The notes under the pieces: model-generated | Told to the model about the DNA's origin: nothing | Seen by the model: the letters and a program-made list of their open reading frames with translations, nothing else | Database searches by the model: none | In this document: one piece after another, positions 43,598 through 60,185 of the stretch | Layout: every line of letters starts with the position of its first letter | How positions within the stretch are numbered: the first letter of the stretch is position 1 | Translations under genes and position numbers: made by a program | From: Guillardia theta CCMP2712 | Lineage: Eukaryota; Protista; Cryptophyta | Direction of reading: 5' to 3' | NCBI RefSeq assembly: GCF_000315625.1 | Contig: NW_005434449.1 | Location: 3,273-63,457 of the forward strand | Length of the DNA stretch: 60,185 bases

Positions 43598-43897
43598 AGC
43601 ATTCTAGAGAAGGTAGGACTCCGGGAGGCAACCGAAGGCCGCTCGGAGAGGCAACTCAGGGTCTTCTGACTGAGGCTGAGGAAGCTGAAGGGAGGCCCAT
43701 GAGTAGTTGGCGGCCGAAGGCCGAGGGGAGGAGAGGCAACTCTTCCGACCGAGAAGGCATCAAGGATGCAGAAGAAGCGGCAGGCCGCAGAGACGACAAG
43801 CGGCGATCAAGATCATCATCAAGTCGACGGCGGCATCGGGTCACAAGAGAGTCTTGTTCGGAGATCGCAAACATGATCCAAAAGATCGCAAACATGA
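43598..43897 (+). pseudogene. Degenerate, rearranged relic of the telomeric element (3' repeats followed by ORF fragments)
   Basis: Aligns by eye to the 76-nt 3' repeat (ACCGAAGGCC, GGAGAGGCAACTC, CTGACTGAGGCTGAGGAAGCTGAA) and to ORF sequence GATCAAGATCATCATCAAGTCGACGGCGGCATC. Confidence 0.85.
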
Positions 43898-43898
43898 T

Positions 43899-43938
43899 TT
43901 TAGGGTTTAGGGTTTAGGGTTTAGGGTTTAGGGTTTAG
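43899..43938 (+). repeat. Telomeric tract (TTTAGGG)5 TTTAG
   Basis: Directly visible; G-rich strand on + implies the chromosome end lies to the right. Confidence 0.97.
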
Positions 43939-44084
43939 TGCGCCGTTATTTTCGGCAGCGCCGTTATTTTCGGCAGCGCCGTTATTTTCGGCAGCATGGC
44001 TCCTCGTCAGGTGTAGGGGAAGCCGCCAGGGCGCCAAGGAAGCTGCAAGCGAGAGGTTTGTATACTTCAAATAGCTTTCTAAGT

Positions 44085-46230
44085 ATGGTTCTTCAGTATG
44101 ATGAAAATGTTCGCAACCTGCTGTATCGGAGATCATGCCAATACACGCAGAGCGGACTTGTGGATGCCTCTGTCCTCGAAGCTGATCTCGTCGAGAGGGT
44201 GAAGAGCTTCGCGAAGCGTTATCCGAACAGCAGGACAGCCCAGGCTTGCAAGGCTGTGGAGGGATGCACCCCCGACGCTATCGCAGAAGCCATCCGCTCG
44301 ACATGTCAGCAGGCACGACGTGAGCTTCTGCAAGAAGCGATGGCTGGATGGAGTGACGCATCCAGAGAGTGGTTTATGCAGCAGATTGAAGAAGCCAAGA
44401 AAGAGAAGGTCGAGACATACACCGCCTCAGCAGGCAACGAGGTGACTTCCTTCATCTCCATGACTCTCCTGGGCATCTCCTCGGTGTATGTCAACCATGA
44501 AGAAAAGCTGAAGAAGAAATTTGAAGACTCGGATCGGACTGATCGTAGACTCAGTGCAAGAGAGTAAAGCAATCATGTGGAAGGCTCCGTATAGACCCGA
44601 GATAGCGAGTGCTGAGGAGATCCCGGTGACTGTTTCCTTCCTCCGCAATGCACAAGCGGAGAAGCTCTGGCAGGGAAGAGAGGACTTCGCGATCGATGGT
44701 CGCAAGTTCACAGCTGTACATGTGAGCATCGTGCACGATCGATCTTTCAAGATTCGAGCCAAGAGAGGACCCTGGGGCAAAGGGGGCAGCTTGGCAGAGC
44801 TGACTCACCTGCTAACCTTGGGCGGCATGACAACGGCTGAGATAGCTGCCGTCTATCGCTATCAGCTGCTGCGCCAGTCCCTGGCAGCGGTACAGCTCCA
44901 GCCGCTGGCAGGCATGCTGGTCGCTGGGGCGCCAGGACAGCAAGTCCACAAAGGCTTAGGTCAGAAAGGCTTCGTCGCTGTAGGGGCCAACGTCATCTGG
45001 AGACAGAGGGAGGTGGAGTGGATCGTCTCCTCGAGCTGCCCAGAGGCGAATGATACAGCATTTCGAGCTTTCCGAGAGAGCGAAGCGATGGAGGGAGTAC
45101 ACCTGACTCTGTTCAGCGAGGACCCGAAGATCAGAGAGGCGCTCGCAGTCGAGTTGACAGCGGATCGCTTTGTGTCCAGAAATAAGTTGAAGAAGGCATC
45201 AAGACTGCAGAAGAAGGCAGGCGGCAAGGACGGCAAGGAGATCAAGATCATCATCAAGTCGACGGCGGCATCTGGTCGCTTCACGAGGAAGGAGATGGAG
45301 GGGCTGTGCAACGGCGGCAACACGTCTATCGCAAGAGTCAAGAGAGTCTTGTTGGAGATCGCTAACAGGCTCGAGATCAACGTTGAAGGCATCGACATGG
45401 AGGAGGATTTGAACACCAAGTCCTGGAACGGGTCCAAGCTATGCATCCTCCTCGGCTCCACGGAGGATGCTCGACGCATGATGAAGGAGCTGCCCTTCTA
45501 TCTCGAAGGCGCAGCAACCAAGCTCGAAGCAGTCGGCTTCGACAAGGAGCCTGAGGCGGCTGGTCAGCGGGGCACCAGCGACGCAGCGCAGCGACAGGAG
45601 GAGAGCGAGGGAGAGTGGCTGGAGTTTACAGACCTGGAGAGGATCACAATGGAGGCAGCATCTCCGTCAAGCCAAGAGGACATGCAGCTCGTCAGCGAGC
45701 TGTCAGCAGTCATCGAAGATGCAGCTTCTTTGAACGAGGCGGGGACGAGCGAGCCGATCAAGCTGGTCCTGGACAAGGCCGTTGGCAACCTCCACGACAC
45801 GTTCTACTCTCCGGGGAGCCTGGAGTTCATGTCGCTGGGAGAGTGGGCGAAGATGCCAGAGGAGCAGGGAGTTGGGCGCAACGTTCTCAAGGAGAAGCTG
45901 GGGAAGTGGCTGCAGAGCAAGCGCTGGACTCGCGTGCAAGGAGAGAGCAAGAAGGCAAGGAGGGGCAGCGCGTTCTCGCCACGGGCAACGGCAGCTGCTG
46001 AGCTTGAGCAGGAGGCGGAGAGCGACGACATAGAGCGTCGATCTCTTAGCTTCCTGTTCATAGCACTGAGTAAATTCGCAGAGATGCATGTGCTGGCCTG
46101 CTCGCTGAAGGTGGACAAGAAGGACCGACTGCGAGTGGAGATGAGGGAAGATGACGAAGAAGAGGAAGACATGGAGGAAGAGCAAGGCGAGGGCGAGGAA
46201 GAAGACGGGGCGAGCCCGTACCGAGCTTGA
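44085..46230 (+). pseudogene. Frameshifted copy of the element ORF
   Basis: Split into ORFs 43938-44567 and 44521-46230; also has a 6-nt in-frame deletion relative to the other copies. Confidence 0.85.
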
Positions 46231-46260
46231 GCTGAGCTCAAGGTAATGAGAGAAGGTGGA

Positions 46261-46468
46261 GGCGACCGAAGGCCAAGGTGAGGAGAGGCAACTCTCCTGA
46301 CTGAGGCTGAGGAAGCTGAATGGAGGAGGAGTAGGGGGCAACCGAAGGCCAAGGTGAGGAGAGGCAACTCTTCTGACTGAGGCTGAGGAAGCTGAATGGA
46401 GGTAGAGTAGGTGGTGACCGAAGGCCAAGGTGAGGAGAGGCAACTCTCCTGACTGAGGCTGAGGAAGC
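46261..46468 (+). repeat. 76-nt tandem repeat x2.7 in the element 3' UTR (present in every complete copy)
   Basis: Units start at 46261, 46337 and 46413. Confidence 0.95.
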
Positions 46469-46649
46469 CAAGAGAAGACAGCAGAAGTACAGAGTAGAAA
46501 GACGCCTCAGAAGCAGGGTTCGCATTGTAGGCCGTGTACTCCCAGTGCTCGAGCGCCTCTTTAGACTAGGATCAAATTGCATAAGCCCACAACGAGGCCG
46601 AGCAACATTCTAGCATTCTAATAAACTCACATAATAATAATAATAATAA

Positions 46650-46667
46650 TAGGGTTTAGGGTTTAGG
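46650..46667 (+). repeat. Telomeric spacer tract
   Basis: TAGGGTTTAGGGTTTAGG. Confidence 0.95.
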
Positions 46668-49334
46668 AGCAGGCCGTTATTTTCGGCAGCATGGCTCCTT
46701 GCCAGGTGTAGGGGAAGCTGCCAGGGCGCCAAGGAAGCTGCAAGCGAGAGGTTTGTATACTTCAAATAGCTTTCTAAGTATGGTTCTTCAGTATGATGAA
46801 AATGTTCGCAACCTGCTGTATCGGAGATCATGCCAATACACGCAGAGCGGACTTGTGGATGCCTCTGTCCTCGAAGCTGATCTCGTCGAGAGGGTGAAGA
46901 GCTTCGCGAAGCGTTATCCGAACAGCAGGACAGCCCAGGCTTGCAAGGCTGTGGAGGGATGCACCCCCGACGCTATCGCAGAAGCCATCCGCTCGACATG
47001 TCAGCAGGCACGACGTGAGCTTCTGCAAGAAGCGATGGCTGGATGGAGTGACGCATCCAGAGAGTGGTTTATGCAGCAGATTGAAGAAGCCAAGAAGGAG
47101 AAGGTCGAGACATACACCGCCTCAGCAGGCAACGAGGTGACTTCCTTCATCTCCATGACTCTCCTGGGCATCTCCTCGGTGTATGTCAACCATGAAGAAA
47201 AGCTGAAGAAGAAATTTGAAGAGATCGGACTGATCGTAGACTCAGTGCAAGAGAGTAAAGCAATCATGTGGAAGGCTCCGTATAGACCCGAGATAGCGAG
47301 TGCTGAGGAGATCCCGGTGACTGTTTCCTTCCTCCGCAATGCACAAGCGGAGAAGCTCTGGCAGGGAAGAGAGGACTTCGCGATCGATGGTCGCAAGTTC
47401 ACAGCTGTACATGTGAGCATCGTGCACGATCGATCTTTCAAGATTCGAGCCAAGAGAGGACCCTGGGGCAAAGGGGGCAGCTTGGCAGAGCTGACTCACC
47501 TGCTAACCTTGGGCGGCATGACAACGGCTGAGATAGCTGCCGTCTATCGCTATCAGCTGCTGCGCCAGTCCCTTGCAGCGGTCCAACTCCAGCCGCTGGC
47601 AGGCATGCTGGTCGCTGGGGCGCCAGGACAGCAAGTCCACAAAGGCTTAGGTCAGAAAGGCTTCATCGCTGTAGGGGCCAACGTCATCTGGAGACAGAGG
47701 GAGGTGGAGTGGATCGTCTCCTCGAGCTGCCCAGAGGCGAATGATACAGCATTTCGAGCTTTCCGAGAGAGCGAAGCGATGGAGGGAGTACACCTGACTC
47801 TGTTCAGCGAGGACCCGAAGATCAGAGAGGCGCTCGCAGTCGAGTTGACAGCTGATCGCTTTGTGTCCAGAAATAAGTTGAAGAAGGCATCAAGGATGCA
47901 GAAGAAGGCAGGCGGCAAGGACGGCAAGGAGATCAAGATCATCATCAAGTCGACGGCGGCATCTGGTCGCTTCACGAGGAAGGAGATGGAGGGGCTGTGC
48001 AACGGCGGCAACACGTCCATCGCAAGAGTCAAGAGAGTCTTGTTGGAGATCGCTAACAGGCTCGAGATCAACGTTGAAGGCATCGACATGGAGGAGGATT
48101 TGAACACCAAGTCCTGGAACGGGTCCAAGCTATGCATCCTCCTCGGCTCCACGGAGGATGCTCGACGCATGATGAAGGAGCTGCCCTTCTATCTCGAAGG
48201 CGCAGCAACCAAGCTCGAAGCAGTCGGCTTCGACAAGGAGCCTGACTCTGAGGCGGCTGGTCAGCGGGGCACCAGCGACGCAGCGCAGCGACAGGAGGAG
48301 AGCGAGGGAGAGTGGCTGGAGTTTACAGACCTGGAGAGGATCACCATGGAGGCAGCATCTCCGTCAAGCCAAGAGGACATGCAGCTCGTCAGCGAGCTGT
48401 CAGCAGTCATCGAAGATGCAGCTTCTTTGAACGAGGCGGGGACGAGCGAGCCGATCAAGCTGGTCCTGGACAAGGCCGTTGGCAACCTCCACGACACGTT
48501 CTACTCTCCGGGGAGCCTGGAGTTCATGTCGCTGGGAGAGTGGGCGAAGATGCCAGAGGAGCAGGGAGTTGGGCGCAACGTTCTCAAGGAGAAGCTGGGG
48601 AAGTGGCTGCAGAGCAAGCGCTGGACTCGCGTGCAAGGAGAGAGCAAGAAGGCAAGGAGGGGCAGCGCGTTCTCGCCACGGGCAACGGCAGCTGCTGAGC
48701 TTGAGCAGGAGGCGGAGAGCGACGACATAGAGCGTCGATCTCTTAGCCTCCTGTTCATAGCACTGAGTAAATTCGCAGAGATGCATGTGCTGGCCTGCTC
48801 GCTGAAGGTGGACAAGAAGGACCGACTGCGAGTGGAGATGAGGGAAGATGACGAAGAAGAGGAAGACATGGAGGAAGAGCAAGGCGAGGGCGAGGAAGAA
48901 GACGGGGCGAGCCCGTACCGAGCTTGAGCTGAGCCCAAGGTAAGGAGAGAAGGTAGGAGGCGACCGAAGGCCAAGGTGAGGAGAGGCAACTCTCCTGACT
49001 GAGGCTGAGGAAGCTGAATGGAGGAGGAGTAGGTGGCGACCGAAGGCCAAGGTGAGGAGAGGCAACTCTTCTGACTGAGGCTGAGGAAGCTGAATGGAGG
49101 TAGAGTAGGTGGTGACCGAAGGCCAAGGTGAGGAGAGGCAACTCTCCTGACTGAGGCTGAGGAAGCCAAGAGAAGACAGCAGAAGTAGAGAGTAGAAAGA
49201 CGCCTCAGAAGCAGGGTTCGCATTGTAGGCCGTGTACTCCCAGTGCTCGAGCGCCTCTTTAGACTAGGATCAAATTGCATAAGCCCACAACGAGGCCGAG
49301 CAACATTCTAGCATTCTAATAAACTCACATAATA
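46668..49334 (+). mobile_element. Telomere-associated element, copy 2 (intact)
   Basis: Same organisation; short (TAA)2 tail. Confidence 0.88.
46780..48927 (+). CDS. 715-aa element protein, ORF1/Gag-like with RRM-like segments and acidic tail
   Basis: Uninterrupted ORF from the first in-frame ATG; near-identical in all copies. Confidence 0.8.
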   Translation: MVLQYDENVRNLLYRRSCQYTQSGLVDASVLEADLVERVKSFAKRYPNSRTAQACKAVEGCTPDAIAEAIRSTCQQARRELLQEAMAGWSDASREWFMQQIEEAKKEKVETYTASAGNEVTSFISMTLLGISSVYVNHEEKLKKKFEEIGLIVDSVQESKAIMWKAPYRPEIASAEEIPVTVSFLRNAQAEKLWQGREDFAIDGRKFTAVHVSIVHDRSFKIRAKRGPWGKGGSLAELTHLLTLGGMTTAEIAAVYRYQLLRQSLAAVQLQPLAGMLVAGAPGQQVHKGLGQKGFIAVGANVIWRQREVEWIVSSSCPEANDTAFRAFRESEAMEGVHLTLFSEDPKIREALAVELTADRFVSRNKLKKASRMQKKAGGKDGKEIKIIIKSTAASGRFTRKEMEGLCNGGNTSIARVKRVLLEIANRLEINVEGIDMEEDLNTKSWNGSKLCILLGSTEDARRMMKELPFYLEGAATKLEAVGFDKEPDSEAAGQRGTSDAAQRQEESEGEWLEFTDLERITMEAASPSSQEDMQLVSELSAVIEDAASLNEAGTSEPIKLVLDKAVGNLHDTFYSPGSLEFMSLGEWAKMPEEQGVGRNVLKEKLGKWLQSKRWTRVQGESKKARRGSAFSPRATAAAELEQEAESDDIERRSLSLLFIALSKFAEMHVLACSLKVDKKDRLRVEMREDDEEEEDMEEEQGEGEEEDGASPYRA

Positions 49335-49349
49335 AGGTTTAGGGTTTAG
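49335..49349 (+). repeat. Telomeric spacer tract
   Basis: AGGTTTAGGGTTTAG. Confidence 0.9.
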
Positions 49350-50249
49350 AGCGCCGGTTATTTCAGGCACCATGGCAGCGCCGGTTATTTCAGGCACCAT
49401 GGCAGCGCCGGTTATTTCAGGCACCATGGCTGCACGCGTGGTGTAGGGGAAGCTGCCAGGGCGCCAAGGAAGCTGCAAGCGAAAGGTTTGTATACTTCAA
49501 ATAGCTTTCTAAGTATGGTTCTTCAGTATGATGAAAATGTTCGCAACCTGCTGTTTCGGAGATCATGCCAATACACGCAGCGCGGACTTGTGGATGCCTC
49601 TGTCCTCGAAGCTGATCTTGTCGAGAGGGTGAAGAGCTTCGCGAAGCGTTATCCGAACAGCAGGACAGCTCAGGCTTGCAAGGCTGTGGAGGGATGCACC
49701 CCCGACGCTATCGCAGAAGCCATCCGCTCGACATGTCAGCAGGCACGACGTGAGCTTCTACAAGAAGCGATGACTGGATGGAGTGACGCATCCAGAGAGT
49801 GGTTTATGCAGCAGATTGAAGAAGCCAAGAAGGAGAAGGTCGAGACATACACCGCCTCAGCAGGCAACGAGGTGACTTCCTTCATCTCCATGACTCTCCT
49901 GGGCATCTCCTCGGTGTATGTCAACCAAGAGGAGAACCTGAAGAAGAAATTCGAAGAGATCGGACTGATCGTAGACTCAGTGCAAGAGAGTAAAGCAATC
50001 ATGTGGAAGGCTCCGTATAGACCCGAGATAGCGAGTGCTGAGGAGATCCCGGTGACTGTTTCCTTCCTCCGCAATGCACAAGCGGAGAAGCTCTGGCAGC
50101 GAAGAGAGGACTTCGCGATCGATGGTCGCAAGTTCACAGCTGTACATGTGAGCATCGTGCACGATCGATCTTTCAAGATTCGAGCCAAGAGAGGACCCTG
50201 GGGCAAAGGGGGCAAACTTGGCAGAGCTGACCCACCTGCTACCATTGGC
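49350..50249 (+). mobile_element. Telomere-associated element, copy 3 (partial, ends at assembly gap)
   Basis: 3x 27-nt 5' repeats and the 5' part of the ORF. Confidence 0.85.
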
Positions 50250-50349
50250 NNNNNNNNNNNNNNNNNNNNNNNNNNNNNNNNNNNNNNNNNNNNNNNNNNN
50301 NNNNNNNNNNNNNNNNNNNNNNNNNNNNNNNNNNNNNNNNNNNNNNNNN
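50250..50349. other. Assembly gap (100 N)
   Basis: Run of N. Confidence 1.
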
Positions 50350-50383
50350 ATCGTTTTGCTTGCAAATGTCAGATCCTAAAATA

Positions 50384-53251
50384 GCGCCGGTTATTCCAGG
50401 CAGCGCCGGTTATTCCAGGCAGCGCCGGTTATTCCAGGCAGCGCCGGTTATTCCAGGCAGCGCCGGTTATTCCAGGCAGCGCCGGTTATTCCAGGCAGCG
50501 CCGGTTATTCCAGGCAGCGCCGGTTATTCCAGGCAGCGCCGGTTATTCCAGGCAGCGCCGGTTATTCCAGGCAGCGCCGGTTATTCCAGGCACCATGGCT
50601 GCACGCGTGGTGTAGGGGAAGCTGCCAGGGCGCCAAGGAAGCTGCAAGCGAGAGGTTTGTATACTTCAAATAGCTTTCTAAGTATGGTTCTTCAGTATGA
50701 TGAAAATGTTCGCAACCTGCTGTATCGGAGATCATGCCAATACACGCAGAGCGGACTTGTGGATGCCTCTGTCCTCGAAGCTGATCTCGTCGAGAGGGTG
50801 AAGAGCTTCGCGAAGCGTTATCCGAACAGCAGGACAGCCCAGGCTTGCAAGGCTGTGGAGGGATGCACCCCCGACGCTATCGCAGAAGCCATCCGCTCGA
50901 CATGTCAGCAGGCACGACGTGAGCTTCTCCAAGAAGCGATGGCTGGATGGAGTGACGCATCCAGAGAGTGGTTTATGCAGCAGATTGAAGAAGCCAAGAA
51001 GGAGAAGGTCGAGACATACACCGCCTCAGCAGGCAACGAGGTGACTTCCTTCATCTCCATGACTCTCCTGGGCATCTCCTCGGTGTATGTCAACCATGAA
51101 GAAAAGCTGAAGAAGAAATTTGAAGAGATCGGACTGATCGTAGACTCAGTGCAAGAGAGTAAAGCAATCATGTGGAAGGCTCCGTATAGACCCGAGATAG
51201 CGAGTGCTGAGGAGATCCCGGTGACTGTTTCCTTCCTCCGCAATGCACAAGCGGAGAAGATAGCGAGTGCTGAGGAGATCCCGGTGACTGTTTCCTTCCT
51301 CCGCAATGCACAAGCGGATGTGAGCATCGTGCACGATCGATCTTTCAAGATTCGAGCCAAGAGAGGACCCTGGGGCAAAGGGGGCAGCTTGGCAGAGCTG
51401 ACTCACCTGTTAACCTTTGGCGGCATGACAACGGCTGAGATAGCTGCCGTCTATCGCTATCAGCTGCTGCGCCAGTCCCTTGCAGCGGTCCAACTCCAGC
51501 CGCTGGCAGGCATGCTGGTCGCTGGGGCGCCAGGACAGCAAGTCCACAAAGGCTTAGGTCAGAAAGGCTTCATCGCTGTAGGGGCCAACGTCATCTGGAG
51601 ACAGAGGGAGGTGGAGTGGATCGTCTCCTCGAGCTGCCCAGAGGCGAATGATACAGCATTTCGAGCTTTCCGAGAGAGCGAAGCGATGGAGGGAGTACAC
51701 CTGACTCTGTTCAGCGAGGACCCGAAGATCAGAGAGGCGCTCGCAGTCGAGTTGACAGCTGATCGCTTTGTGTCCAGAAATAAGTTGAAGAAGGCATCAA
51801 GGATGCAGAAGAAGGCAGGCGGCAAGGACGGCAAGGAGATCAAGATCATCATCAAGTCGACGGCGGCATCTGGTCGCTTCACGAGGAAGGAGATGGAGGG
51901 GCTGTGCAACGGCGGCAACACGTCTATCGCAAGAGTCAAGAGAGTCTTGTTGGAGATCGCTAACAGGCTCGAGATCAACGTTGAAGGCATCGACATGGAG
52001 GAGGATTTGAACACCAAGTCCTGGAACGGGTCCAAGCTATGCATCCTCCTCGGCTCCACGGAGGATGCTCGACGCATGATGAAGGAGCTGCCCTTCTATC
52101 TCGAAGGCGCAGCAACCAAGCTCGAAGCAGTCGGCTTCGACAAGGAGCCTGACTCTGAGGCGGCTGGTCAGCGGGGCACCAGCGACGCAGCGCAGCGACA
52201 GGAGGAGAGCGAGGGAGAGTGGCTGGAGTTTACAGACCTGGAGAGGATCACAATGGAGGCAGCATCTCCGTCAAGCCAAGAGGACATGCAGCTCGTCAGC
52301 GAGCTGTCAGCAGTCATCGAAGATGCAGCTTCTTTGAACGAGGCGGGGACGAGCGAGCCGATCAAGCTGGTCCTGGACAAGGCCGTTGGCAACCTCCACG
52401 ACACCTTCTACTCTCCGGGGAGCCTGGAGTTCATGTCGCTGGGAGAGTGGGCGAAGATGCCAGAGGAGCAGGGAGTTGGGCGCAACGTTCTCAAGGAGAA
52501 GCTGGGGAAGTGGCTGCAGAGCAAGCGCTGGACTCGCGTGCAAGGAGAGAGCAAGAAGGCAAGGAGGGGCAGCGCGTTCTCGCCACGGGCAACGGCAGCT
52601 GCTGAGCTTGAGCAGGAGGCGGAGAGCGACGACATAGAGCGTCGATCTCTTAGCTTCCTGTTCATAGCACTGAGTAAATTCGCAGAGATGCATGTGCTGG
52701 CCTGCTCGCTGAAGGTGGACAAGAAGGACCGACTGCGAGTGGAGATGAGGGAAGATGACGAAGAAGAGGAAGACATGGAGGAAGAGCAAGGCGAGGGCGA
52801 GGAAGAAGACGGGGCGAGCCCGTACCGAGCTTGAGCTGAGCTCAAGGTAAGGAGAGAAGGTAGGAGGCGACCGAAGGCCAAGGTGAGGAGAGGCAACTCT
52901 CCTGACTGAAGCTGAGGAAGCTGAATGGAGGAGGAGTAGGTGGCGACCGAAGGCCAAGGTGAGGAGAGGCAACTCTCCTGACTGAGGCTGAGGAAGCTGA
53001 ATGGAGGTAGAGTAGGTGGTGACCGAAGGCCAAGGTGAGGAGAGGCAACTCTCCTGACTGAGGCTGAGGAAGCCAAGAGAAGACAGCAGAAGTAGAGAGT
53101 AGAAAGACGCCTCAGAAGCAGGGTTCGCATTGTAGGCCGTGTACTCCCAGTGCTCGAGCGCCTCTTTAGACTAGGATCCAATTGCACAAGCCCACAACGA
53201 GGCCGAGCAACATTCTAGCATTCTAATAAACTCACATAATAATAATAATAA
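50384..53251 (+). mobile_element. Telomere-associated element, copy 4
   Basis: 11x 19-nt 5' repeats (50384-50592), ORF with an in-frame duplication-replacement, (TAA)5 tail. Confidence 0.88.
50684..52834 (+). CDS. 716-aa element protein variant (19 aa replaced by a 20-aa local duplication)
   Basis: IASAEEIPVTVSFLRNAQA is repeated in place of LWQGREDFAIDGRKFTAVH. Confidence 0.7.
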   Translation: MVLQYDENVRNLLYRRSCQYTQSGLVDASVLEADLVERVKSFAKRYPNSRTAQACKAVEGCTPDAIAEAIRSTCQQARRELLQEAMAGWSDASREWFMQQIEEAKKEKVETYTASAGNEVTSFISMTLLGISSVYVNHEEKLKKKFEEIGLIVDSVQESKAIMWKAPYRPEIASAEEIPVTVSFLRNAQAEKIASAEEIPVTVSFLRNAQADVSIVHDRSFKIRAKRGPWGKGGSLAELTHLLTFGGMTTAEIAAVYRYQLLRQSLAAVQLQPLAGMLVAGAPGQQVHKGLGQKGFIAVGANVIWRQREVEWIVSSSCPEANDTAFRAFRESEAMEGVHLTLFSEDPKIREALAVELTADRFVSRNKLKKASRMQKKAGGKDGKEIKIIIKSTAASGRFTRKEMEGLCNGGNTSIARVKRVLLEIANRLEINVEGIDMEEDLNTKSWNGSKLCILLGSTEDARRMMKELPFYLEGAATKLEAVGFDKEPDSEAAGQRGTSDAAQRQEESEGEWLEFTDLERITMEAASPSSQEDMQLVSELSAVIEDAASLNEAGTSEPIKLVLDKAVGNLHDTFYSPGSLEFMSLGEWAKMPEEQGVGRNVLKEKLGKWLQSKRWTRVQGESKKARRGSAFSPRATAAAELEQEAESDDIERRSLSFLFIALSKFAEMHVLACSLKVDKKDRLRVEMREDDEEEEDMEEEQGEGEEEDGASPYRA

Positions 53252-53269
53252 TAGGGTTTAGGGTTTAGG
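53252..53269 (+). repeat. Telomeric spacer tract
   Basis: TAGGGTTTAGGGTTTAGG. Confidence 0.95.
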
Positions 53270-56055
53270 AGCGCCGGTTATTTCAGGCAGCGCCGGTTAT
53301 TTCAGGCAGCGCCGGTTATTTCAGGCAGCGCCGGTTATTTCAGGCAGCGCCGGTTATTTCAGGCAGCGCCGGTTATTTCAGGCAGCGCCGGTTATTTCAG
53401 GCACCATGGCTGCACGCGTGGTGTAGGGGAAGCTGCCAGGGCGCCAAGGAAGCTGCAAGCGAGAGGTTTGTATACTTCAAATAGCTTTCTAAGTATGGTT
53501 CTTCAGTATGATGAAAATGTTCGCAACCTGCTGTATCGGAGATCATGCCAATACACGCAGAGCGGACTTGTGGATGCCTCTGTCCTCGAAGCTGATCTCG
53601 TCGAGAGGGTGAAGAGCTTCGCGAAGCGTTATCCGAACAGCAGGACAGCCCAGGCTTGCAAGGCTGTGGAGGGATGCACCCCCGACGCTATCGCAGAAGC
53701 CATCCGCTCGACATGTCAGCAGGCACGACGTGAGCTTCTCCAAGAAGCGATGACTGGATGGAGTGACGCATCCAGAGAGTGGTTTATGCAGCAGATTGAA
53801 GAAGCCAAGAAGGAGAAGGTCGAGACATACACCGCCTCAGCAGGCAACGAGGTGACTTCCTTCATCTCCATGACTCTCCTGGGCATCTTGAAGAAGCCAA
53901 GAAGGAGAAGGTCGAGACATACACCGCCTCAGCAGGCAACGAGGTGACTTACTCAGTGCAAGAGAGTAAAGCAATCATGTGGAAGGCTCCGTATAGACCC
54001 GAGATAGCGAGTGCTGAGGAGATCCCGGTGACTGTTTCCTTCCTCCGCAATGCACAAGCGGAGAAGCTCTGGCAGGGAAGAGAGGACTTCGCGATCGATG
54101 GTCGCAAGTTCACAGCTGTACATGTGAGCATCGTGCACGATCGATCTTTCAAGATTCGAGCCAAGAGAGGACCCTGGGGCAAAGGGGGCAGCTTGGCAGA
54201 GCTGACTCACCTGCTAACCTTGGGCGGCATGACAACGGCTGAGATAGCTGCCGTCTATCGCTATCAGCTGCTGCGCCAGTCCCTTGCAGCGGTCCAACTC
54301 CAGCCGCTGGCAGGCATGCTGGTCGCTGGGGCGCCAGGACAGCAAGTCCACAAAGGCTTAGGTCAGAAAGGCTTCATCGCTGTAGGGGCCAACGTCATCT
54401 GGAGACAGAGGGAGGTGGAGTGGATCGTCTCCTCGAGCTGCCCAGAGGCGAATGATACAGCATTTCGAGCTTTCCGAGAGAGCGAAGCGATGGAGGGAGT
54501 ACACCTGACTCTGTTCAGCGAGGACCCGAAGATCAGAGAGGCGCTCGCAGTCGAGTTGACAGCTGATCGCTTTGTGTCCAGAAATAAGTTGAAGAAGGCA
54601 TCAAGGATGCAGAAGAAGGCAGGCGGCAAGGACGGCAAGGAGATCAAGATCATCATCAAGTCGACGGCGGCATCTGGTCGCTTCACGAGGAAGGAGATGG
54701 AGGGGCTGTGCAACGGCGGCAACACGTCTATCGCAAGAGTCAAGAGAGTCTTGTTGGAGATCGCTAACAGGCTCGAGATCAACGTTGAAGGCATCGACAT
54801 GGAGGAGGATTTGAACACCAAGTCCTGGAACGGGTCCAAGCTATGCATCCTCCTCGGCTCCACGGAGGATGCTCGACGCATGATGAAGGAGCTGCCCTTC
54901 TATCTCGAAGGCGCAGCCACCAAGCTCGAAGCAGTCGGCTTCGACAAGGAGCCTGACTCTGAGGCGGCTGGTCAGCGGGGCACCAGCGACGCAGCGCAGC
55001 GACAGGAGGAGAGCGAGGGAGAGTGGCTGGAGTTTACAGACCTGGAGAGGATCACAATGGAGGCAGCATCTCCGTCAAGCCAAGAGGACATGCAGCTCGT
55101 CAGCGAGCTGTCAGCAGTCATCGAAGATGCAGCTTCTTTGAACGAGGCAGGGACGAGCGAGCCGATCAAGCTGGTCCTGGACAAGGCCGTTGGCAACCTC
55201 CACGACACGTTCTACTCTCCGGGGAGCCTGGAGTTCATGTCGCTGGGAGAGTGGGCGAAGATGCCAGAGGAGCAGGGAGTTGGGCGCAACGTTCTCAAGG
55301 AGAAGCTGGGGAAGTGGCTGCAGAGCAAGCGCTGGACTCGCGTGCAAGGAGAGAGCAAGAAGGCAAGGAGGGGCAGCGCGTTCTCGCCACGGGCAACGGC
55401 AGCTGCTGAGCTTGAGCAGGAGGCGGAGAGCGACGACATAGAGCGTCGATCTCTTAGCCTCCTGTTCATAGCACTGAGTAAATTCGCAGAGATGCATGTG
55501 CTGGCCTGCTCGCTGAAGGTGGACAAGAAGGACCGACTGCGAGTGGAGATGAGGGAAGATGACGAAGAAGAGGAAGACATGGAGGAAGAGCAAGGCGAGG
55601 GCGAGGAAGAAGACGGGGCGAGCCCGTACCGAGCTTGAGCTGAGCTCAAGGTAAGGAGAGAAGGTAGGAGGCGACCGAAAGCCAAGGTGAGGAGAGGCAA
55701 CTCTCCTGACTGAGGCTGAGGAAGCTGAATGGAGGAGGAGTAGGTGGCGACCGAAGGCCAAGGTGAGGAGAGGCAACTCTTCTGACTGAGGCTGAGGAAG
55801 CTGAATGGAGGTAGAGTAGGTGGTGACCGAAGGCCAAGGTGAGGAGAGGCAACTCTCCTGACTGAGGCTGAGGAAGCCAAGAGAAGACAGCAGAAGTACA
55901 GAGTAGAAAGACGCCTCAGAAGCAGGGTTCGCATTGTAGGCCGTGTACTCCCAGTGCTCGAGCGCCTCTTTAGACTAGGATCAAATTGCATAAGCCCACA
56001 ACGAGGCCGAGCAACATTCTAGCATTCTAATAAACTCACATAATAATAATAATAA
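53270..56055 (+). mobile_element. Telomere-associated element, copy 5 (ORF frameshifted)
   Basis: 7x 19-nt 5' repeats (53271-53403), duplication-replacement at ~53889-53950, (TAA)5 tail. Confidence 0.88.
53495..55638 (+). pseudogene. Frameshifted copy of the element ORF
   Basis: Split into ORFs 53468-53947 and 53944-55638. Confidence 0.8.
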
Positions 56056-56121
56056 TAGGGTTTAGGGTTTAGGGTTTAGGGTTTAGGGTTTAGGGTTTAG
56101 GGTTTAGGGTTTAGGGTTTAG
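56056..56121 (+). repeat. Telomeric spacer tract TAGGG(TTTAGGG)8TTTAG
   Basis: Directly visible. Confidence 0.97.
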
Positions 56122-58819
56122 AGGCGCCGTTATTTTCGGCAGCAGGCGCCGTTATTTTCGGCAGCATGGCTCCTCGTCAGGTGTAGGGGAAGCCGCCAGG
56201 GCGCCAAGGAAGCTGCAAGCAAGAGGTTTGTATACTTCAAATAGCTTTCTAAGTATGGTTTTTCAGTATGATGAAAATGTTCGCAACCTGCTGTATCGGA
56301 GATCATGCCAATACACGCAGAGCGGACTTGTGGATGCCTCTGTCCTCGAAGCTGATCTCGTCGAGAGGGTGAAGAGCTTCGCGAAGCGTTATCCGAACAG
56401 CAGGACAGCCCAGGCTTGCAAGGCTGTGGAGGGATGCACCCCCGACGCTATCGCAGAAGCCATCCGCTCGACATGTCAGCAGGCACGACGTGAGCTTCTG
56501 CAAGAAGCGATGACTGGATGGAGTGACGCATCCAGAGAGTGGTTTATGCAGCAGATTGAAGAAGCCAAGAAGGAGAAGGTCGAGACATACACCGCCTCAG
56601 CAGGCAACGAGGTGACTTCCTTCATCTCCATGACTCTCCTGGGCATCTCCTCGGTGTATGTCAACCATGAAGAAAAGTTGAAGAAGAAATTTGAAGAGAT
56701 CGGACTGATCGTAGACTCAGTGCAAGAGAGTAAAGCAATCATGTGGAAGGCTCCGTATAGACCCGAGATAGCGAGTGCTGATGAGATCCCGGTGACTGTT
56801 TCCTTCCTCCGCAATGCACAAGCGGAGAAGCTCTGGCAGGGAAGAGAGGACTTCGCGATCGATGGTCGCAAGTTCACAGCTGTACATGTGAGCATCGTGC
56901 ACGATAGATCTTTCAAGATTCGAGCCAAGAGAGGACCCTGGGGCAAAGGGGGCAGCTTGGCAGAGCTGACTCACCTGCTAACCTTGGGCGGCATGACAAC
57001 GGCTGAGATAGCTGCCGTCTATCGCTATCAGCTGCTGCGCCAGTCCCTTGCAGCGGTCCAACTCCAGCCGCTGGCAGGCATGCTGGTCGCTGGGGCGCCA
57101 GGACAGCAAGTCCACAAAGGCTTAGGTCAGAAAGGCTTCATCGCTGTAGGGGCCAACGTCATCTGGAGACAGAGGGAGGTGGAGTGGATCGTCTCCTCGA
57201 GCTGCCCAGAGGCGAATGATACAGCATTTCGAGCTTTCCGAGAGAGCGAAGCGATGGAGGGAGTACACCTGACTCTGTTCAGCGAGGACCCGAAGATCAG
57301 AGAGGCGCTCGCAGTCGAGTTGACAGCTGATCGCTTTGTGTCCAGAAATAAGTTGAAGAAGGCATCAAGGATGCAGAAGAAGGCAGGCGGCAAGGACGGC
57401 AAGGAGATCAAGATCATCATCAAGTCGACGGCGGCATCTGGTCGCTTCACGAGGAAGGAGATGGAGGGGCTGTGCAACGGCGGCAACACGTCTATCGCAA
57501 GAGTCAAGAGAGTCTTGTTGGAGATCGCTAACAGGCTCGAGATCAACGTTGAAGGCATCGACATGGAGGAGGATTTGAACACCAAGTCCTGGAACGGGTC
57601 CAAGCTATGCATCCTCCTCGGCTCCACGGAGGATGCTCGACGCATGATGAAGGAGCTGCCCTTCTATCTCGAAGGCGCAGCAACCAAGCTCGAAGCAGTC
57701 GGCTTCGACAAGGAGCCTGACTCTGAGGCGGCTGGTCAGCGGGGCACCAGCGACGCAGCGCAGCGACAGGAGGAGAGCGAGGGAGAGTGGCTGGAGTTTA
57801 CAGACCTGGAGAGGATCACAATGGAGGCAGCATCTCCGTCAAGCCAAGAGGACATGCAGCTCGTCAGCGAGCTGTCAGCAGTCATCGAAGATGCAGCTTC
57901 TTTGAACGAGGCGGGGACGAGCGAGCCGATCAAGCTGGTCCTGGACAAGGCTGTTGGCAACCTCCACGACACGTTCTACTCTCCGGGGAGCCTGGAGTTC
58001 ATGTCGCTGGGAGAGTGGGCGAAGATGCCAGAGGAGCAGGGAGTTGGGCGCAACGTTCTCAAGGAGAAGCTGGGGAAGTGGCTGCAGAGCAAGCGCTGGA
58101 CTCGCGTGCAAGGAGAGAGCAAGAAGGCAAGGAGGGGCAGCGCGTTCTCGCCACGGGCAACGGCAGCTGCTGAGCTTGAGCAGGAGGCGGAGAGCGACGA
58201 CATAGAGCGTCGATCTCTTAGCTTCCTGTTCATAGCACTGAGTAAATTCGCAGAGATGCATGTGCTGGCCTGCTCGCTGAAGGTGGACAAGAAGGACCGA
58301 CTGCGGGTGGAGATGAGGGAAGATGGCGAAGAAGAGGAAGACATGGAGGAAGAGCAAGGCGAGGGCGAGGAAGAAGACGGGGCGAGCCCGTACCGAGCTT
58401 GAGCTGAGCTCAAGGTAAGGAGAGAAGGTAGGAGGCGACCGAAGGCCAAGGTGAGGAGAGGCAACTCTCCTGACTGAAGCTGAGGAAGCTGAATGGAGGA
58501 CGAGTAGGTGGCGACCGAAGGCCAAGGTGAGGAGAGGCAACTCTCCTGACTGAGGCTGAGGAAGCTGAATGGAGGTAGAGTAGGTGGCGACCGAAGGCCA
58601 AGGTGAGGAGAGGCAACTCTCCTGACTGAGGCTGAGGAAGCCAAGAGAAGACAGCAGAAGTAGAGAGTAGAAAGACGCCTCAGAAGCAGGGTTCGCATTG
58701 TAGGCCGTGTACTCCCAGTGCTCGAGCGCCTCTTTAGACTAGGATCAAATTGCAAAAGCCCACAACGAGGCCGAGCAACATTCTAGCATTCTAATAAACT
58801 CACATAATAATAATAATAA
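56122..58819 (+). mobile_element. Telomere-associated element, copy 6 (intact)
   Basis: 2x 18-nt 5' repeats, intact ORF, 3' repeats, (TAA)5 tail. Confidence 0.88.
56255..58402 (+). CDS. 715-aa element protein, ORF1/Gag-like with RRM-like segments and acidic tail
   Basis: Uninterrupted ORF. Confidence 0.8.
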   Translation: MVFQYDENVRNLLYRRSCQYTQSGLVDASVLEADLVERVKSFAKRYPNSRTAQACKAVEGCTPDAIAEAIRSTCQQARRELLQEAMTGWSDASREWFMQQIEEAKKEKVETYTASAGNEVTSFISMTLLGISSVYVNHEEKLKKKFEEIGLIVDSVQESKAIMWKAPYRPEIASADEIPVTVSFLRNAQAEKLWQGREDFAIDGRKFTAVHVSIVHDRSFKIRAKRGPWGKGGSLAELTHLLTLGGMTTAEIAAVYRYQLLRQSLAAVQLQPLAGMLVAGAPGQQVHKGLGQKGFIAVGANVIWRQREVEWIVSSSCPEANDTAFRAFRESEAMEGVHLTLFSEDPKIREALAVELTADRFVSRNKLKKASRMQKKAGGKDGKEIKIIIKSTAASGRFTRKEMEGLCNGGNTSIARVKRVLLEIANRLEINVEGIDMEEDLNTKSWNGSKLCILLGSTEDARRMMKELPFYLEGAATKLEAVGFDKEPDSEAAGQRGTSDAAQRQEESEGEWLEFTDLERITMEAASPSSQEDMQLVSELSAVIEDAASLNEAGTSEPIKLVLDKAVGNLHDTFYSPGSLEFMSLGEWAKMPEEQGVGRNVLKEKLGKWLQSKRWTRVQGESKKARRGSAFSPRATAAAELEQEAESDDIERRSLSFLFIALSKFAEMHVLACSLKVDKKDRLRVEMREDGEEEEDMEEEQGEGEEEDGASPYRA

Positions 58820-58886
58820 TAGGGTTTAGGGTTTAGGGTTTAGGGTTTAGGGTTTAGGGTTTAGGGTTTAGGGTTTTTTTTTTTAG
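58820..58886 (+). repeat. Telomeric spacer tract TAGGG(TTTAGGG)7 T11 AG
   Basis: Directly visible. Confidence 0.95.
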
Positions 58887-60185
58887 CCGTTATTTTCGGC
58901 AGCATGGCTCCTCGTCAGGTGTAGGGGAAGCCGCCAGGGCGCCAAGGAAGCTGCAATTCAGGCAGCGCCGGTTATTTCAGGCAGCGCCGGTTATTTCAGG
59001 CAGCGCCGGTTATTTCAGGCAGCGCGGAAGCTGCCAGGGCGCCAAGGAAGCTGCAAGCGAGAGGTTTGTATACTTCAAATAGCTTTCTAAGTATGGTTCT
59101 TCAGTATGATGAAAATGTTCGCAACCTGCTGTATCGGAGATCATGCCAATACACGCAGAGCGGACTTGTGGATGCCTCTGTCCTCGAAGCTGATCTCGTC
59201 GAGAGGGTGAAGAGCTTCGCGAAGCGTTATCCGAACAGCAGGACAGCCCAGGCTTGCAAGGCTGTGGAGGGATGCACCCCCGACGCTATCGCAGAAGCCA
59301 TCCGCTCGACATGTCAGCAGGCACGACGTGAGCTTCTGCAAGAAGCGATGACTGGATGGAGTGACGCATCCAGAGAGTGGTTTATGCAGCAGATTGAAGA
59401 AGCCAAGAAGGAGAAGGTCGAGACATACACCGCCTCAGCAGGCAACGAGGTGACTTCCTTCATCTCCATGACTCTCCTGGGCATCTCCTCGGTGTATGTC
59501 AACCATGAAGAAAAGCTGAAGAAGAAATTCGAAGAGATCGGACTGATCGTAGACTCAGTGCAAGAGAGTAAAGCAATCATGTGGAAGGCTCCGTATAGAC
59601 CCGAGATAGCGAGTGCTGAGGAGATCCCGGTGACTGTTTCCTTCCTCCGCAATGCACAAGCGGAGAAGCTCTGGCAGGGAAGAGAGGACTTCGCGATCGA
59701 TGGTCGCAAGTTCACAGCTGTACATGTGAGCATCGTGCACGATCGATCTTTCAAGATTCGAGCCAAGAGAGGACCCTGGGGCAAAGGGGGCAGCTTGGCA
59801 GAGCTGACTCACCTGCTAACCTTGGGCGGCATGACAACGGCTGAGATAGCTGCCGTCTATCGCTATCAGCTGCTGCGCCAGTCCCTTGCAGCGGTCCAAC
59901 TCCAGCCGCTGGCAGGCATGCTGGTCGCTGGGGCGCCAGGACAGCAAGTCCACAAAGGCTTAGGTCAGAAAGGCTTCATCGCTGTAGGGGCCAACGTCAT
60001 CTGGAGACAGAGGGAGGTGGAGTGGATCGTCTCCTCGAGCTGCCCAGACGCGAATGATACAGCATTTCGAGCTTTCCGAGAGAGCGAAGCGATGGAGGGA
60101 GTACACCTGACTCTGTTCAGCGAGGACCCGAAGATCAGAGAGGCGCTCGCAAGTCGAGTTGACAGCTGATCGCTTTGTGTCCAAG
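58887..60185 (+). mobile_element. Telomere-associated element, copy 7 (chimeric 5' end, cut by window end)
   Basis: An 18-nt-type 5' end is followed by 19-nt-type repeats and a restart of the leader; ORF from 59093. Confidence 0.85.

Follow-up and report, generated by a model that had tools for sequence, protein, structure and literature searches.

At the right end of scaffold C225 (63,457 b) of the cryptophyte alga Guillardia theta CCMP2712 lies what is very probably a stack of copies of a non-autonomous non-LTR retrotransposon, which carries ORF1 only, is specific for the TTTAGGG telomere repeat and would depend on ORF2p provided in trans, with some exchange of blocks between chromosome ends. 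The window, i.e. the whole stretch of 60,185 nucleotides that was analysed, ends where the scaffold ends, and its positions 43899-60185 make up the right end of the scaffold. No published description of this element was found in the literature. The evidence for its mobilisation is comparative throughout, the assembly is a gapped draft and the order of units is given as assembled.

BLAST detected 7 co-oriented copies of ~2.7 kb in the window with 96.9–100% identity (Table 1), in line with the initial annotation, which had counted at least 7 near-identical units running in the same direction. The units differ by 0.7–3.8% and form two subfamilies (a and b) with different monomers. The flanks of the assembly gap are discontinuous and out of frame, the left one stopping at unit position 843 and the right one resuming with the 5' monomers (11 x 19 nt) of the unit that follows. 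Therefore at least ~1.8 kb and a junction, or even whole extra units, are missing, and the junction between copies 3 and 4 lies inside the gap as had been presumed. Two listed ORFs that span the Ns (49488..50384 and 50360..52834) are artefactual where they run into the gap. Unit 7 is incomplete because the scaffold ends inside it.

Table 1. Features of the terminal array and its proximal flank, in window positions. Unit 2 (46670-49335) is the reference copy for BLAST and for unit positions.
Feature	Position	Strand	BLAST span	Details
Decayed relics of older telomeric elements	43484..43898	+		blastn; proximal to the array. 43484-43606, 91–93% identity to L013/L008, 3' region of the CTA-tailed family; 43624-43753, ~80% identity to the 76-nt repeats; 43752-43842, ORF1 fragment, 89% identity to the unit ORF
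Interstitial telomere tract 1	43899..43938	+		(TTTAGGG)5.7
Unit 1	43939..46651	+	43978-46637	18-nt monomers x3.1 at 43940-43995; ORF with ATG at 44085, broken after 160 aa, second piece 44521-46230; 76-nt repeats 46261-46468; AATAAA at 46620; tail 46632-46651
Junction telomere tract	46652..46669	+		2.6 repeats
Unit 2	46670..49335	+	46670-49335	Intact ORF1 46780-48927, 715 aa; 76-nt repeats 48944-49166; conserved 3' module ~49225-49329; AATAAA at 49318; short tail 49330-49335
Junction telomere tract	49336..49349	+		2.3 repeats
Unit 3, subfamily b	49350..50249	+	49411-50248	27-nt monomers x3 at 49350-49430; gap after the first 843 unit positions
Assembly gap	50250..50349			Missing here: at least 1.8 kb of unit 3, and the 3/4 junction
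Unit 4, subfamily b	50350..53253	+	50580-53242	19-nt monomers x11 at 50383-50592; ORF 50684-52834 open, 716 aa, a 63-nt duplication replacing the adjacent 60 nt at 51195-51318; 76-nt repeats 52851-53073; tail 53237-53253
Junction telomere tract	53254..53269	+		2.6 repeats
Unit 5, subfamily b	53270..56057	+	53391-56046	19-nt monomers x7 at 53270-53403; ORF with ATG at 53495, broken after 150 aa; 76-nt repeats 55655-55877; tail 56041-56057
Junction telomere tract	56058..56121	+		9.6 repeats
Unit 6, subfamily a	56122..58821	+	56148-58810	22-nt monomers x2; intact ORF1 56255-58402; 76-nt repeats 58419-58641; tail 58805-58821
Junction telomere tract	58822..58884	+		7.9 repeats, then T-run; junction also on scaffold C289
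Unit 7, chimeric a/b 5' region	58885..60185	+	59026-60183	ORF with ATG at 59093, stop at 60169, 358 aa

All TTTAGGG tracts are on the + strand (exact dimer matches: 17 vs 0 expected) and, as first described, they separate the units at each of the five visible junctions, with 2.3 to 9.6 repeats per tract. Units start with 1 to 11 monomers of 18-, 19- or 27-nt types. These had been called tandem hairpin repeats; the tandem arrangement stands, but the hairpin character is weak (z -2.5 for type a and -0.3 for type b). As for the structured repeats claimed at the 3' side, a 76-nt repeat present in 2.9 copies indeed folds into a stable hairpin with a GCAA tetraloop (z -5.1 and -4.1, 0/200 shuffles being as good). 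AATAAA and then (TAA)n follow in every copy, the tails in the window being (TAA)2-6TA. Neither an LTR nor a TIR exists in the unit, the repeat search giving just the telomere tracts at its flanks and the 76-nt repeats inside it, and its one ORF has no Pfam domain, so no RT, endonuclease, zinc knuckle or helicase domain, which agrees with the absence of RT, nuclease, LTRs and TIRs noted at the outset. The 715-aa ORF assigned to each unit was intact in units 2, 4 and 6, but it was broken in units 1, 5 and 7.

The ORF of the unit is homologous over its full length to the ORF1 of two LINE families, LINE-A and LINE-B (29–32% identity, E 1e-55 to 1e-80), in which ORF1 lies directly upstream of ORF2. 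In the structure model (pLDDT 65), residues 380-484 correspond to an RRM (Z 7–8.4) and the best matches of the whole model are multi-RRM proteins; the unit protein is thus predicted to contain an RRM fold. The ORF is intact in 23 of 27 full-length copies, and a pN/pS of 0.16–0.17, calculated from intact copies only, indicates that ORF1 is under purifying selection. The protein family was found only in Guillardia, Hanusia and a few metagenome contigs; it has been present since the Guillardia/Hanusia split and is matched by MMETSP transcripts.

The initial annotation had suggested looking for longer relatives that share the 3' end and encode RT and endonuclease. Such LINEs, bearing APE and RT, were found at the same ends; in fact, RVT_1 matches concentrate at scaffold ends in the same orientation as the unit. 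One of them (L021:2171-8434) has a 2087-aa ORF with Exo_endo_phos (33.5 bits) and RVT_1 (122 bits) domains by Pfam. Its C-terminal 260 aa resemble the zinc-knuckle and RLE region of the R2 structures 9dou, 9nl3 and 8gh6; the RLE model (pLDDT 57) matches R2 with probability 1.0 and TMq 0.5–0.56, followed by other PD-(D/E)xK nucleases, and motifs of the form CCxxC..H..C and PD..E are conserved near the C-terminus of ORF2. ORF2 measures 2,100–2,600 aa in the autonomous relatives. A LINE-B-like relative from a metagenome (L034) encodes an ORF1 of 713 aa and an ORF2 of 2575 aa with C48, APE, RT and zf-RVT. Using Pfam, this ORF2 alone gave a Ulp1/C48 peptidase domain, neither RNase H nor Peptidase_C48 was detected in LINE-A, and RNase H and C48 occur together with RT only in more distant relatives. 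By phmmer, the partner RT is about equally near to R2 (9e-23) and L1 (1e-18). The domain architecture of the candidate partners, as modelled, is of the Dualen type (APE, RT and an R2-like RLE). The extra R2-like RLE in ORF2 sets them apart from SART-like elements of the R1 clade. The G. theta genome has at least 10 families of telomeric elements, with chimeric elements among them. From these comparisons, the unit would most likely be mobilised in trans by its Dualen-type relatives at the same ends.

A conserved 3' module of ~110 nt is common to the unit, LINE-A, LINE-B and the CTA-tailed family. Its motifs (GGGCC..CCCAxG..TTTAGAC..CTAGCATTCTAATAAAcTCa and then the trinucleotide tail) are also kept in an environmental relative, and the 3' junction register is ...TA|GGGTTTAGGG in all families. 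The unit resembles LINE-A in the 3' box but LINE-B in the tail. An ORF1-only content, a LINE-homologous ORF and the shared 3' module together speak for the non-autonomous, telomere-repeat-embedded non-LTR element proposed earlier. Nonetheless, sharing of the module could result from common descent and polyadenylation constraint rather than from present-day recognition in trans. The 3' box can pair with the G-strand repeat using G:U pairs, and no covariation was seen in the pairs. Raw RNA reads are almost only from the + strand (e.g. 529 vs 1.4) and in three runs (X36, X4 and X11) untemplated poly(A) begins directly after 49335. The unit is transcribed from the sense strand and its mRNA is polyadenylated exactly at the end of the (UAA)n tail.

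Genome-wide BLASTN located the unit at no fewer than 30 scaffold ends rather than at a single locus, on the '-' strand at low and on the '+' strand at high coordinates. Therefore the sense strand runs outward at chromosome ends, and the SART-like orientation initially proposed holds at all of them. On C435 and C134 the 3' end of the unit is followed by telomeric tracts with, together, more than 90 TTTAGGG repeats. Of 27 units, only 1 has its nearest relative in its own array and 26 have it in another, and divergence within arrays (1.66%) and between ends (1.25%) shows no array clustering. Junctions vary in their tails, (TAA)2 to (TAA)8, in their tracts, 1 to 25 repeats, and in monomer number, 1 to 11. 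Among ~45 junctions, the 5' starts are ragged and confined to the first 20 nt, with no deep 5' truncation, a pattern that LINEs do not usually show and that would fit recombinational spread just as well; target-site duplications are indistinguishable within a 7-nt repeat target. The junction between units 6 and 7 is the same as one on C289 in tail, 7.9 repeats, T-run and the first 81 nt, the flanking units differing by 0.6%; therefore recombination also moves blocks between ends. Apart from this shared junction, the comparisons favour independent insertion over local tandem duplication, as argued originally. In addition, head-to-head arrays on C72 and 3'-truncated copies capped by telomere repeats were observed.

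Under the preferred reading, ORF1p would coat its own RNA, and ORF2p from an autonomous relative would recognise the ~110-nt module in trans. A nuclease may then nick the C-rich strand, whose ...CCCTA-3' end would pair with UA in the tail and prime reverse transcription; such priming would yield the fixed ...(TAA)nTA|GGGTTTAGGG junction without poly(A). At the 5' end, a ragged join to the G-rich strand would be made at TTTAG(G). New copies would enter the terminal tract distal to older ones and telomerase, for which G. theta has a TERT gene, would re-extend the end. Erosion followed by healing would leave 3'-truncated copies with repeat caps, and break-induced replication or gene conversion between ends would add some block exchange. 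Perhaps a HeT-A/TART-like division of labour arose independently in this telomerase-positive protist, the RRM protein and the arrays buffering or capping ends and steering the partners, so that the ORF1-only element would be selected rather than a mere parasite, and the 3' RNA box complementary to the G-strand repeat might aid targeting; we regard this extension as doubtful.

A former retroelement that now spreads only by exchange, break-induced replication or gene conversion, seeded by interstitial tracts in the manner of yeast Y' or of MoTeR expansion, would also produce subtelomeric arrays. In Magnaporthe, interstitial telomere tracts break and drive array change by break-induced replication (PMC7367193), and the junction common to C225 and C289, the head-to-head arrays, the chimeric elements and the lack of deep 5' truncations all fit such a process. 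Yet the closest relatives of 26 of the 27 units sit in other arrays, all junctions but one differ in tail, tract length, phase, monomer number and 5' start, sense poly(A) transcripts stop precisely where the element does, purifying selection acts on ORF1 and intact autonomous relatives retain open frames of 2,500 aa. Moreover, Pfam detected no helicase domain of the Y' type in the unit ORF. We therefore give spread by recombination alone a small chance. Selection on ORF1 could instead mean that the host itself uses the 715-aa RRM protein, perhaps to cap telomeres or to handle RNA, the retroelement features being historical. A pN/pS of ~0.17, the 23/27 intact ORFs, an expressed gene (MMETSP transcripts included) and retention since the Guillardia/Hanusia split are what such a subtelomeric gene family would show. 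However, the identical protein family is the ORF1 of autonomous LINEs, selection for a cis-acting ORF1p explains the low pN/pS equally well, and the copies are many, turn over, are in several cases broken and lack a single conserved locus, which makes a domesticated gene very unlikely.

Copying of the RNA onto the 3' G-overhang without any endonuclease, as in HeT-A, Athena or telomerase, could be thought of for an element that is strictly terminal, interleaved with telomerase repeats and able to pair its 3' box with the G-strand repeat via G:U. But priming by the G-overhang on sense RNA would place the antisense strand outward, while the sense strand is outward at every end; the RNA is sense-only and offers no antisense template, the partners carry two endonucleases and covariation is absent from the pairs that the 3' box would form. 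Because of the orientation and the sense-only RNA, end-priming by telomerase is disfavoured; thus, of the two agents initially proposed for mobilisation, a partner LINE now has a candidate but telomerase is not required and has no support, and we hold end addition to be extremely unlikely. Finally, a draft assembly with a mis-sized gap inside the array and a scaffold end inside a unit invites the suspicion that a single- or few-copy gene was collapsed or mis-stacked. We attach hardly any probability to this, given units that are 0.7–3.8% apart, two subfamilies with different monomers and an architecture that recurs at no fewer than 30 scaffold ends and, independently, on a contig from a metagenome.

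Several known systems resemble the stacked, partner-dependent retrotransposon favoured here. SART1 of Bombyx mori inserts at TT|AGG in the telomerase repeat (PMC7265360). With SART1 and TRAS1 (R1 clade), the Guillardia system has in common insertion into telomere repeats at a constant position and orientation, due in SART1/TRAS1 to an element-encoded endonuclease, a dependence on the 3' UTR that is probable in Guillardia, and coexistence with canonical repeats; as in SART, the sense strand runs with the G-rich strand. Unlike them, the Guillardia partners combine APE with an R2-like RLE in an ORF2 of 2,100–2,600 aa, ORF1 is a 715-aa RRM protein in which Pfam found no CCHC knuckles, tails are trinucleotide repeats instead of poly(A), ORF2 is missing from the member sampled most often, and the host, a cryptophyte, has a TERT gene. 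HeT-A, with TART and TAHRE, is likewise ORF1/Gag-only, far commoner than its RT-bearing relatives and dependent in trans, forms head-to-tail arrays at chromosome ends and keeps its coding capacity by selection. This is a functional analogy only: the two proteins are unrelated, and HeT-A has its 5' end outward, no telomerase repeats and a Jockey-clade Gag, whereas the Guillardia unit has its 3' end outward, is embedded in TTTAGGG and coexists with telomerase.

MoTeR arrays of Magnaporthe oryzae are head-to-tail with 0.5 to >20 telomere repeats between copies, and, once truncated terminally, they receive de novo telomeres at seed nucleotides; break-induced replication changes the arrays (PMC7367193). 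MoTeR1 and MoTeR2 similarly form an autonomous and non-autonomous pair with common terminal sequences. However, MoTeRs are CRE-like, have RLE only and point their 5' ends towards the chromosome end, opposite to the Guillardia unit, and MoTeR2 has no conserved ORF, unlike the unit with its selected ORF1. The Dualen/RandI LINEs of Chlamydomonas (Kojima and Fujiwara 2005, cited in PMC9977147 and PMC4640811) have one giant ORF with APE, RLE and RT, and the Dualens described to date, whose target duplications are very long, are either dispersed or centromere-associated. The Guillardia partners share this combination in a giant ORF, and their more distant relatives carry RNase H and a cysteine peptidase. 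They differ from these Dualens by being telomere-repeat-specific; ORF1 and ORF1-only derivatives, both present in Guillardia, go unmentioned in the texts consulted.

To our knowledge, telomere-specific retrotransposons are known from a handful of lineages only, namely insects, Giardia, Chlorella, Magnaporthe and rotifers. In the unicellular alga Chlorella vulgaris, the LINE Zepp accumulates beside TTTAGGG telomeres; it is L1-like, has poly(A) tails and inserts into other Zepp copies, not at a fixed telomere-repeat site, and no ORF1-only partner of it is known. Telomere-specific elements are central to ideas on the relationship between telomerase and retroelements. To their non-LTR members, the Guillardia system would add a new eukaryotic supergroup, the cryptophytes, and a new enzymatic type, i.e. 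LINEs that target the telomere repeat and have both APE and an R2-like nuclease. It would also be the second telomeric element, independent of the first, that is abundant, Gag/ORF1-only and under purifying selection, here beside an active telomerase. With an outward orientation, 3'-truncated copies that telomerase has healed are expected as a distinct mark, and such copies were observed. Two putative site-specific nucleases for the plant-type telomere repeat are on offer. G. theta is culturable and the elements are expressed, which makes the system experimentally tractable. The gene models of 2012 label the ORFs of these elements as dozens of 'hypothetical proteins'.

Seven copies of the ~2.7-kb unit, all in one orientation and 96.9-100% identical in a BLAST search with one unit as query, occupy the window (C225:3273-63457) from 43899 to the end that it shares with scaffold C225. 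The tracts separating them hold 2.3-9.6 TTTAGGG repeats, on the + strand only, and 17 exact TTTAGGG dimers were matched in the window versus none in shuffled sequences; the array of co-oriented units with telomere repeats between them described in the initial annotation was thus confirmed. Each unit comprises 1 to 11 5′ monomers of 18, 19 or 27 nt, a 715-codon ORF preceded by a short one, a 76-nt repeat (2.9 copies), AATAAA and a (TAA)2-6TA tail. LTRs and TIRs were looked for in the unit and none were found, and a Pfam search of its ORF yielded no family or domain, in agreement with the initial description. The repeat structure proposed there was borne out in part: the 76-nt repeat forms a long GCAA-tetraloop hairpin, far more stable than in shuffles (z -5.1 and -4.1), whereas the 5′ monomers are weakly hairpin-like in type a (z -2.5) and without significant hairpin in type b (z -0.3). 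Folding of the whole 150-nt 3′ end was no better than in shuffles (z -0.67).

Units 2, 4 and 6 retain an intact 715-codon ORF, which is disrupted in units 1, 5 and 7. The assembly is a gapped draft. At the gap within the array, window 50250-50349, the left flank stops at unit position 843 and the right flank begins in the 11-copy monomer array of the next unit, so at least 1.8 kb and one junction are missing; the flanks are discontinuous, and ORFs running into the Ns are artefacts. Unit 4 carries a perfect 63-nt tandem duplication in place of the adjacent 60 nt of its ORF, with the frame kept open (716 aa) and 21 residues swapped, which may be genuine or stem from mis-assembly close to the gap. 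Directly proximal to the first telomere tract lie decayed pieces derived from ORF1, the 76-nt repeat and a family with CTA tails, consistent with older insertions positioned inward.

Coordinates of the features discussed (L-numbers are retrieved sequence pieces; G000 is the G. theta genome)
Feature	Location	Strand	Remark
MFS transporter and large RCC1/ephrin-receptor-like/PA/TRP-domain protein	window 19523-32222	-	ordinary cellular genes proximal to the array
Decayed relics	window 43484-43898		
Unit array	window 43899 to end		
AGTAAA and second poly(A) site	window 47255-47273		site at 47273
3′ box	window 49306-49322		CTAGCATTCTAA
Last tail base	window 49335		followed by untemplated poly(A)
Unit 4 duplication	window 51195-51318		
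U6/U7 junction	window 58791-58960		
Same junction on C289	L019 (G000:C289), ~2560-2730	complement	
Head-to-head arrays	L013 (G000:C72:430000-439999), ~1470-3124		
Chimera, LINE-A/unit	L021:~507		
Chimera, RT fragment/unit	L015:4347-6384		
Chimera, ORF1/LINE-A ORF2	L024:105-1673		
3′-truncated capped elements	L003:2775, L007:5968, L008:2008, L009:97, L009:3138, L025:699, L031:2698		

The unit is by no means confined to this locus. Matching proteins assign the genome to Guillardia theta CCMP2712, a cryptophyte alga. Searching the genome (87 Mb, 669 scaffolds) returned unit matches at 97-99% identity in at least 60 places on at least 30 scaffolds (34 of 309 candidates scored), on the - strand where coordinates are low and on the + strand where they are high, and the + copies proved to be at right scaffold ends when checked against scaffold lengths. 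On scaffolds C435 and C134, telomeric tracts totalling more than 90 repeats lie beyond the unit 3′ end, and therefore the arrays adjoin real telomeres. The sense strand of the unit runs 5′-3′ toward the chromosome end, along the G-rich strand. An assembly artefact was rejected, given the occurrence at 30 or more scaffold ends and on an independent contig. Another locus of the genome encodes a TERT RNA-binding domain.

The initial annotation had also suggested a search for longer elements sharing the 3′ end of the unit, and such elements exist. An RT profile search of the genome gave 132 matches, the best of which lie at scaffold ends in outward orientation (lengths checked for part of the RT-bearing scaffolds) and sit in open frames as long as 2,500 aa. 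LINE-A, on C160, has a 2,087-aa ORF with Exo_endo_phos and RVT_1 domains, preceded by an ORF1 homologue, and LINE-B, on C4 and C321, has a 717-aa ORF1 followed by ORF2. Both ORF1s can be aligned to the full length of the unit ORF at 29-32% identity, and it is this homology, together with synteny, that gives the unit ORF the label ORF1. The same layout is seen in a 10.7-kb environmental contig (L034), which opens with a 3′ end resembling that of the unit, then two telomere repeats, encodes a 713-aa ORF1 (83% identical to that of LINE-B) and a 2,575-aa ORF2 with Peptidase_C48, APE, RT and zf-RVT domains, and terminates in a (TAA)n tail followed by telomere repeats. The last 260 aa of LINE-A ORF2 contain a CCHC knuckle and PD...E motifs, kept in the LINE-B-like copies; a model of this C-terminus (pLDDT 57), of modest confidence like that of the unit ORF1, matches the zinc-knuckle and restriction-like-endonuclease region of solved R2 proteins with probability 1.0, the next-best structural matches being other PD-(D/E)xK nucleases. 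In phmmer comparisons the RT is roughly as close to R2 as to L1, and more distant relatives of 2,100-2,800 aa combine RT, RNase H and C48. Judged by domain architecture, the candidate partner LINEs are predicted to be Dualen-type dual-endonuclease elements; PMC9977147 and PMC4640811 ascribe this architecture uniquely to the Dualen group. LINE/Dualen elements have been listed as expanded in all cryptophytes but G. theta (PMC12747079).

These elements share features at their 3′ ends. LINE-A ends in ...TTTAGACTAGAC...TCTAGCATTCTAATAAAATCGA(CTA)n and the unit in ...TTTAGACTAGGA...TTCTAGCATTCTAATAAACTCACA(TAA)nTA, both followed by GGGTTTAGGG, and LINE-B-like copies end in ...GTCTAATAAACTCAAA(TAA)nTA followed by GGG. 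Alignment of six families delimited a conserved 3′ module of ~110 nt, whose last ~35 nt are nearly identical in the environmental relative, with divergence in places farther upstream, and in every family ...TA immediately precedes GGGTTTAGGG. A conserved box present in all families can pair, G:U included, with UUAGGGUUUAG, the G-rich telomere strand, and might help to recognise the target. In RNAalifold, the pairs between the box and the downstream telomere repeat are all invariant and therefore give no covariation evidence for this pairing; one covarying pair was found besides. At the 5′ junctions, by contrast, the boundaries are ragged, with the upstream tract ending variously in TTTAG, TTTAGG, TTTAGGG or GGGTT and the unit start varying within the first monomer. 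At least 10 families can be distinguished, each by its own ~20-nt tandem monomer directly after the telomere tract (L002, L005, L007, L012, L013, L015, L017, L020, L025 and L034). After the monomers come a conserved GGCA(N)CATGG and a very short upstream ORF. Monomer number ranges from 1 to 11 across near-identical copies; the monomers may be promoter monomers or products of reiterative copying.

Raw RNA reads (a 2026 run with the same species label) are nearly all + strand and carry untemplated poly(A) immediately after the last tail base; contigs from two further probable RNA runs have the identical ending. The RNA therefore stops at the element/telomere boundary. DNA copies are without poly(A), from which we infer that reverse transcription starts in the (UAA)n tract. 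A second site, 13 nt past AGTAAA, has untemplated poly(A) in 31 RNA reads, and read depth upstream of it exceeds that at the true 3′ end, which suggests frequent premature polyadenylation inside ORF1 that may attenuate full-length unit RNA. MMETSP transcripts of the unit family come from G. theta and Hanusia phi.

A profile search of 1.84 billion representatives gave 55 matches to the unit protein, those traced being from Guillardia, Hanusia or metagenome contigs, hence no sequence link to a known ORF1/Gag family; a feature search of the ESM Atlas gave no usable match. In the AlphaFold model (pLDDT 65), residues 380-484 are predicted to adopt a canonical RRM fold (Z 7-8.4; rmsd 2.5-3.3 across 76-85 residues), and the best matches of the whole model are multi-RRM proteins such as Prp24. 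LINE ORF1 proteins have an RNA-binding role, which this modelled likeness fits. The ORF is intact in 23 of 27 full-length copies, and the 19 copies that are exactly 715 codons long give a pN/pS of 0.16-0.17.

Divergence within arrays (1.66%) is not below that between ends (1.25%), only 1 of 27 units has its nearest relative in its own array, the two subfamilies are interleaved in the window, and, with one exception, junctions vary in tail, tract, phase and monomer number, all of which argues for dispersal from shared sources and against in-situ tandem duplication; the initial annotation had likewise favoured independent insertion over tandem duplication. The exception is the U6/U7 junction (tail, 7.9 repeats, T-run and the first 81 nt of the next unit), which is identical on C289, between units with ~0.6% divergence and indels, and suggests that a block was transferred from one chromosome end to another, or 5′ transduction. 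In three chimeras, a LINE-A 3′ UTR without its last 160 nt is joined to a unit 5′ end, tail and repeat both being absent, an RT (ORF2) fragment to unit ORF1 residues 605-714 and the unit 3′ end, and the ORF1 of a 59%-identity family to the zinc-knuckle/RLE end of LINE-A ORF2, which suggests that RNAs or DNAs of telomeric elements recombined or underwent template switching. On C72, 17-28 kb from the scaffold end, two telomeric arrays stand head to head with no Ns between them: on one side are a + oriented tail, (TTTAGGG)6 and an ORF2 fragment, on the other units and CCCTAAA tracts in - orientation. The arrangement may go back to an old fusion of two ends, be the palindromic product of a repair event, or reflect a mis-join. 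Taken from sequence comparison, the shared junction, the chimeras and these head-to-head arrays indicate that recombination contributes too.

The analysis shows where the units lie and how they are oriented, the register of their junctions, their homology to autonomous elements, their sense polyadenylated RNA and selection on ORF1. In the best-supported mechanism, ORF2p supplied in trans would carry out target-primed reverse transcription on the C-rich strand, although no insertion event was observed. ORF2p of a partner, with LINE-A and LINE-B as candidates, would recognise the 3′ module; a nick would leave ...CCCTA-3′, pairing with the UA of the tail; the 5′ end would be joined raggedly; and new copies would stack distally, with telomerase re-extending the end. 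The initial annotation had named a partner LINE or possibly telomerase as the source of mobility, and the candidate LINEs with homologous ORF1 favour the former. Priming on the G-overhang, as by HeT-A, Athena or telomerase, is disfavoured, since it would leave the antisense strand outward, whereas here the sense strand is outward, and antisense unit RNA is essentially absent; the wrong orientation and sense-only RNA led us to reject telomerase or end-priming addition. Several elements are truncated on the 3′ side and capped directly by telomere repeats, nearly always with ...A joined to GGG. Given the outward orientation, this is the expected product of terminal erosion followed by telomerase healing; alternatively, reverse transcription was initiated internally. 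The pattern mirrors that of Magnaporthe, where MoTeRs, which have the opposite orientation, form 5′-truncated, healed copies (PMC7367193).

The ORF1-only unit was sampled far more often than its candidate partner LINEs. Telomere-specific non-LTR elements such as SART/TRAS, HeT-A/TART, MoTeR and Zepp are already known; new here are the host lineage, the dual-nuclease partner, the trinucleotide tails and an ORF1-only member under selection. In the literature searched, telomeric retroelements were described neither for cryptophytes nor for the Dualen group.

Finally, 78-88% of unit words are present in many runs labelled as other organisms or as aquatic or lake metagenomes, and the unit protein shares 100% identity with an MMETSP protein labelled “Heterocapsa arctica”. 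These occurrences probably reflect G. theta used as prey, or cross-contamination, of which the telomeric elements could be sensitive markers.
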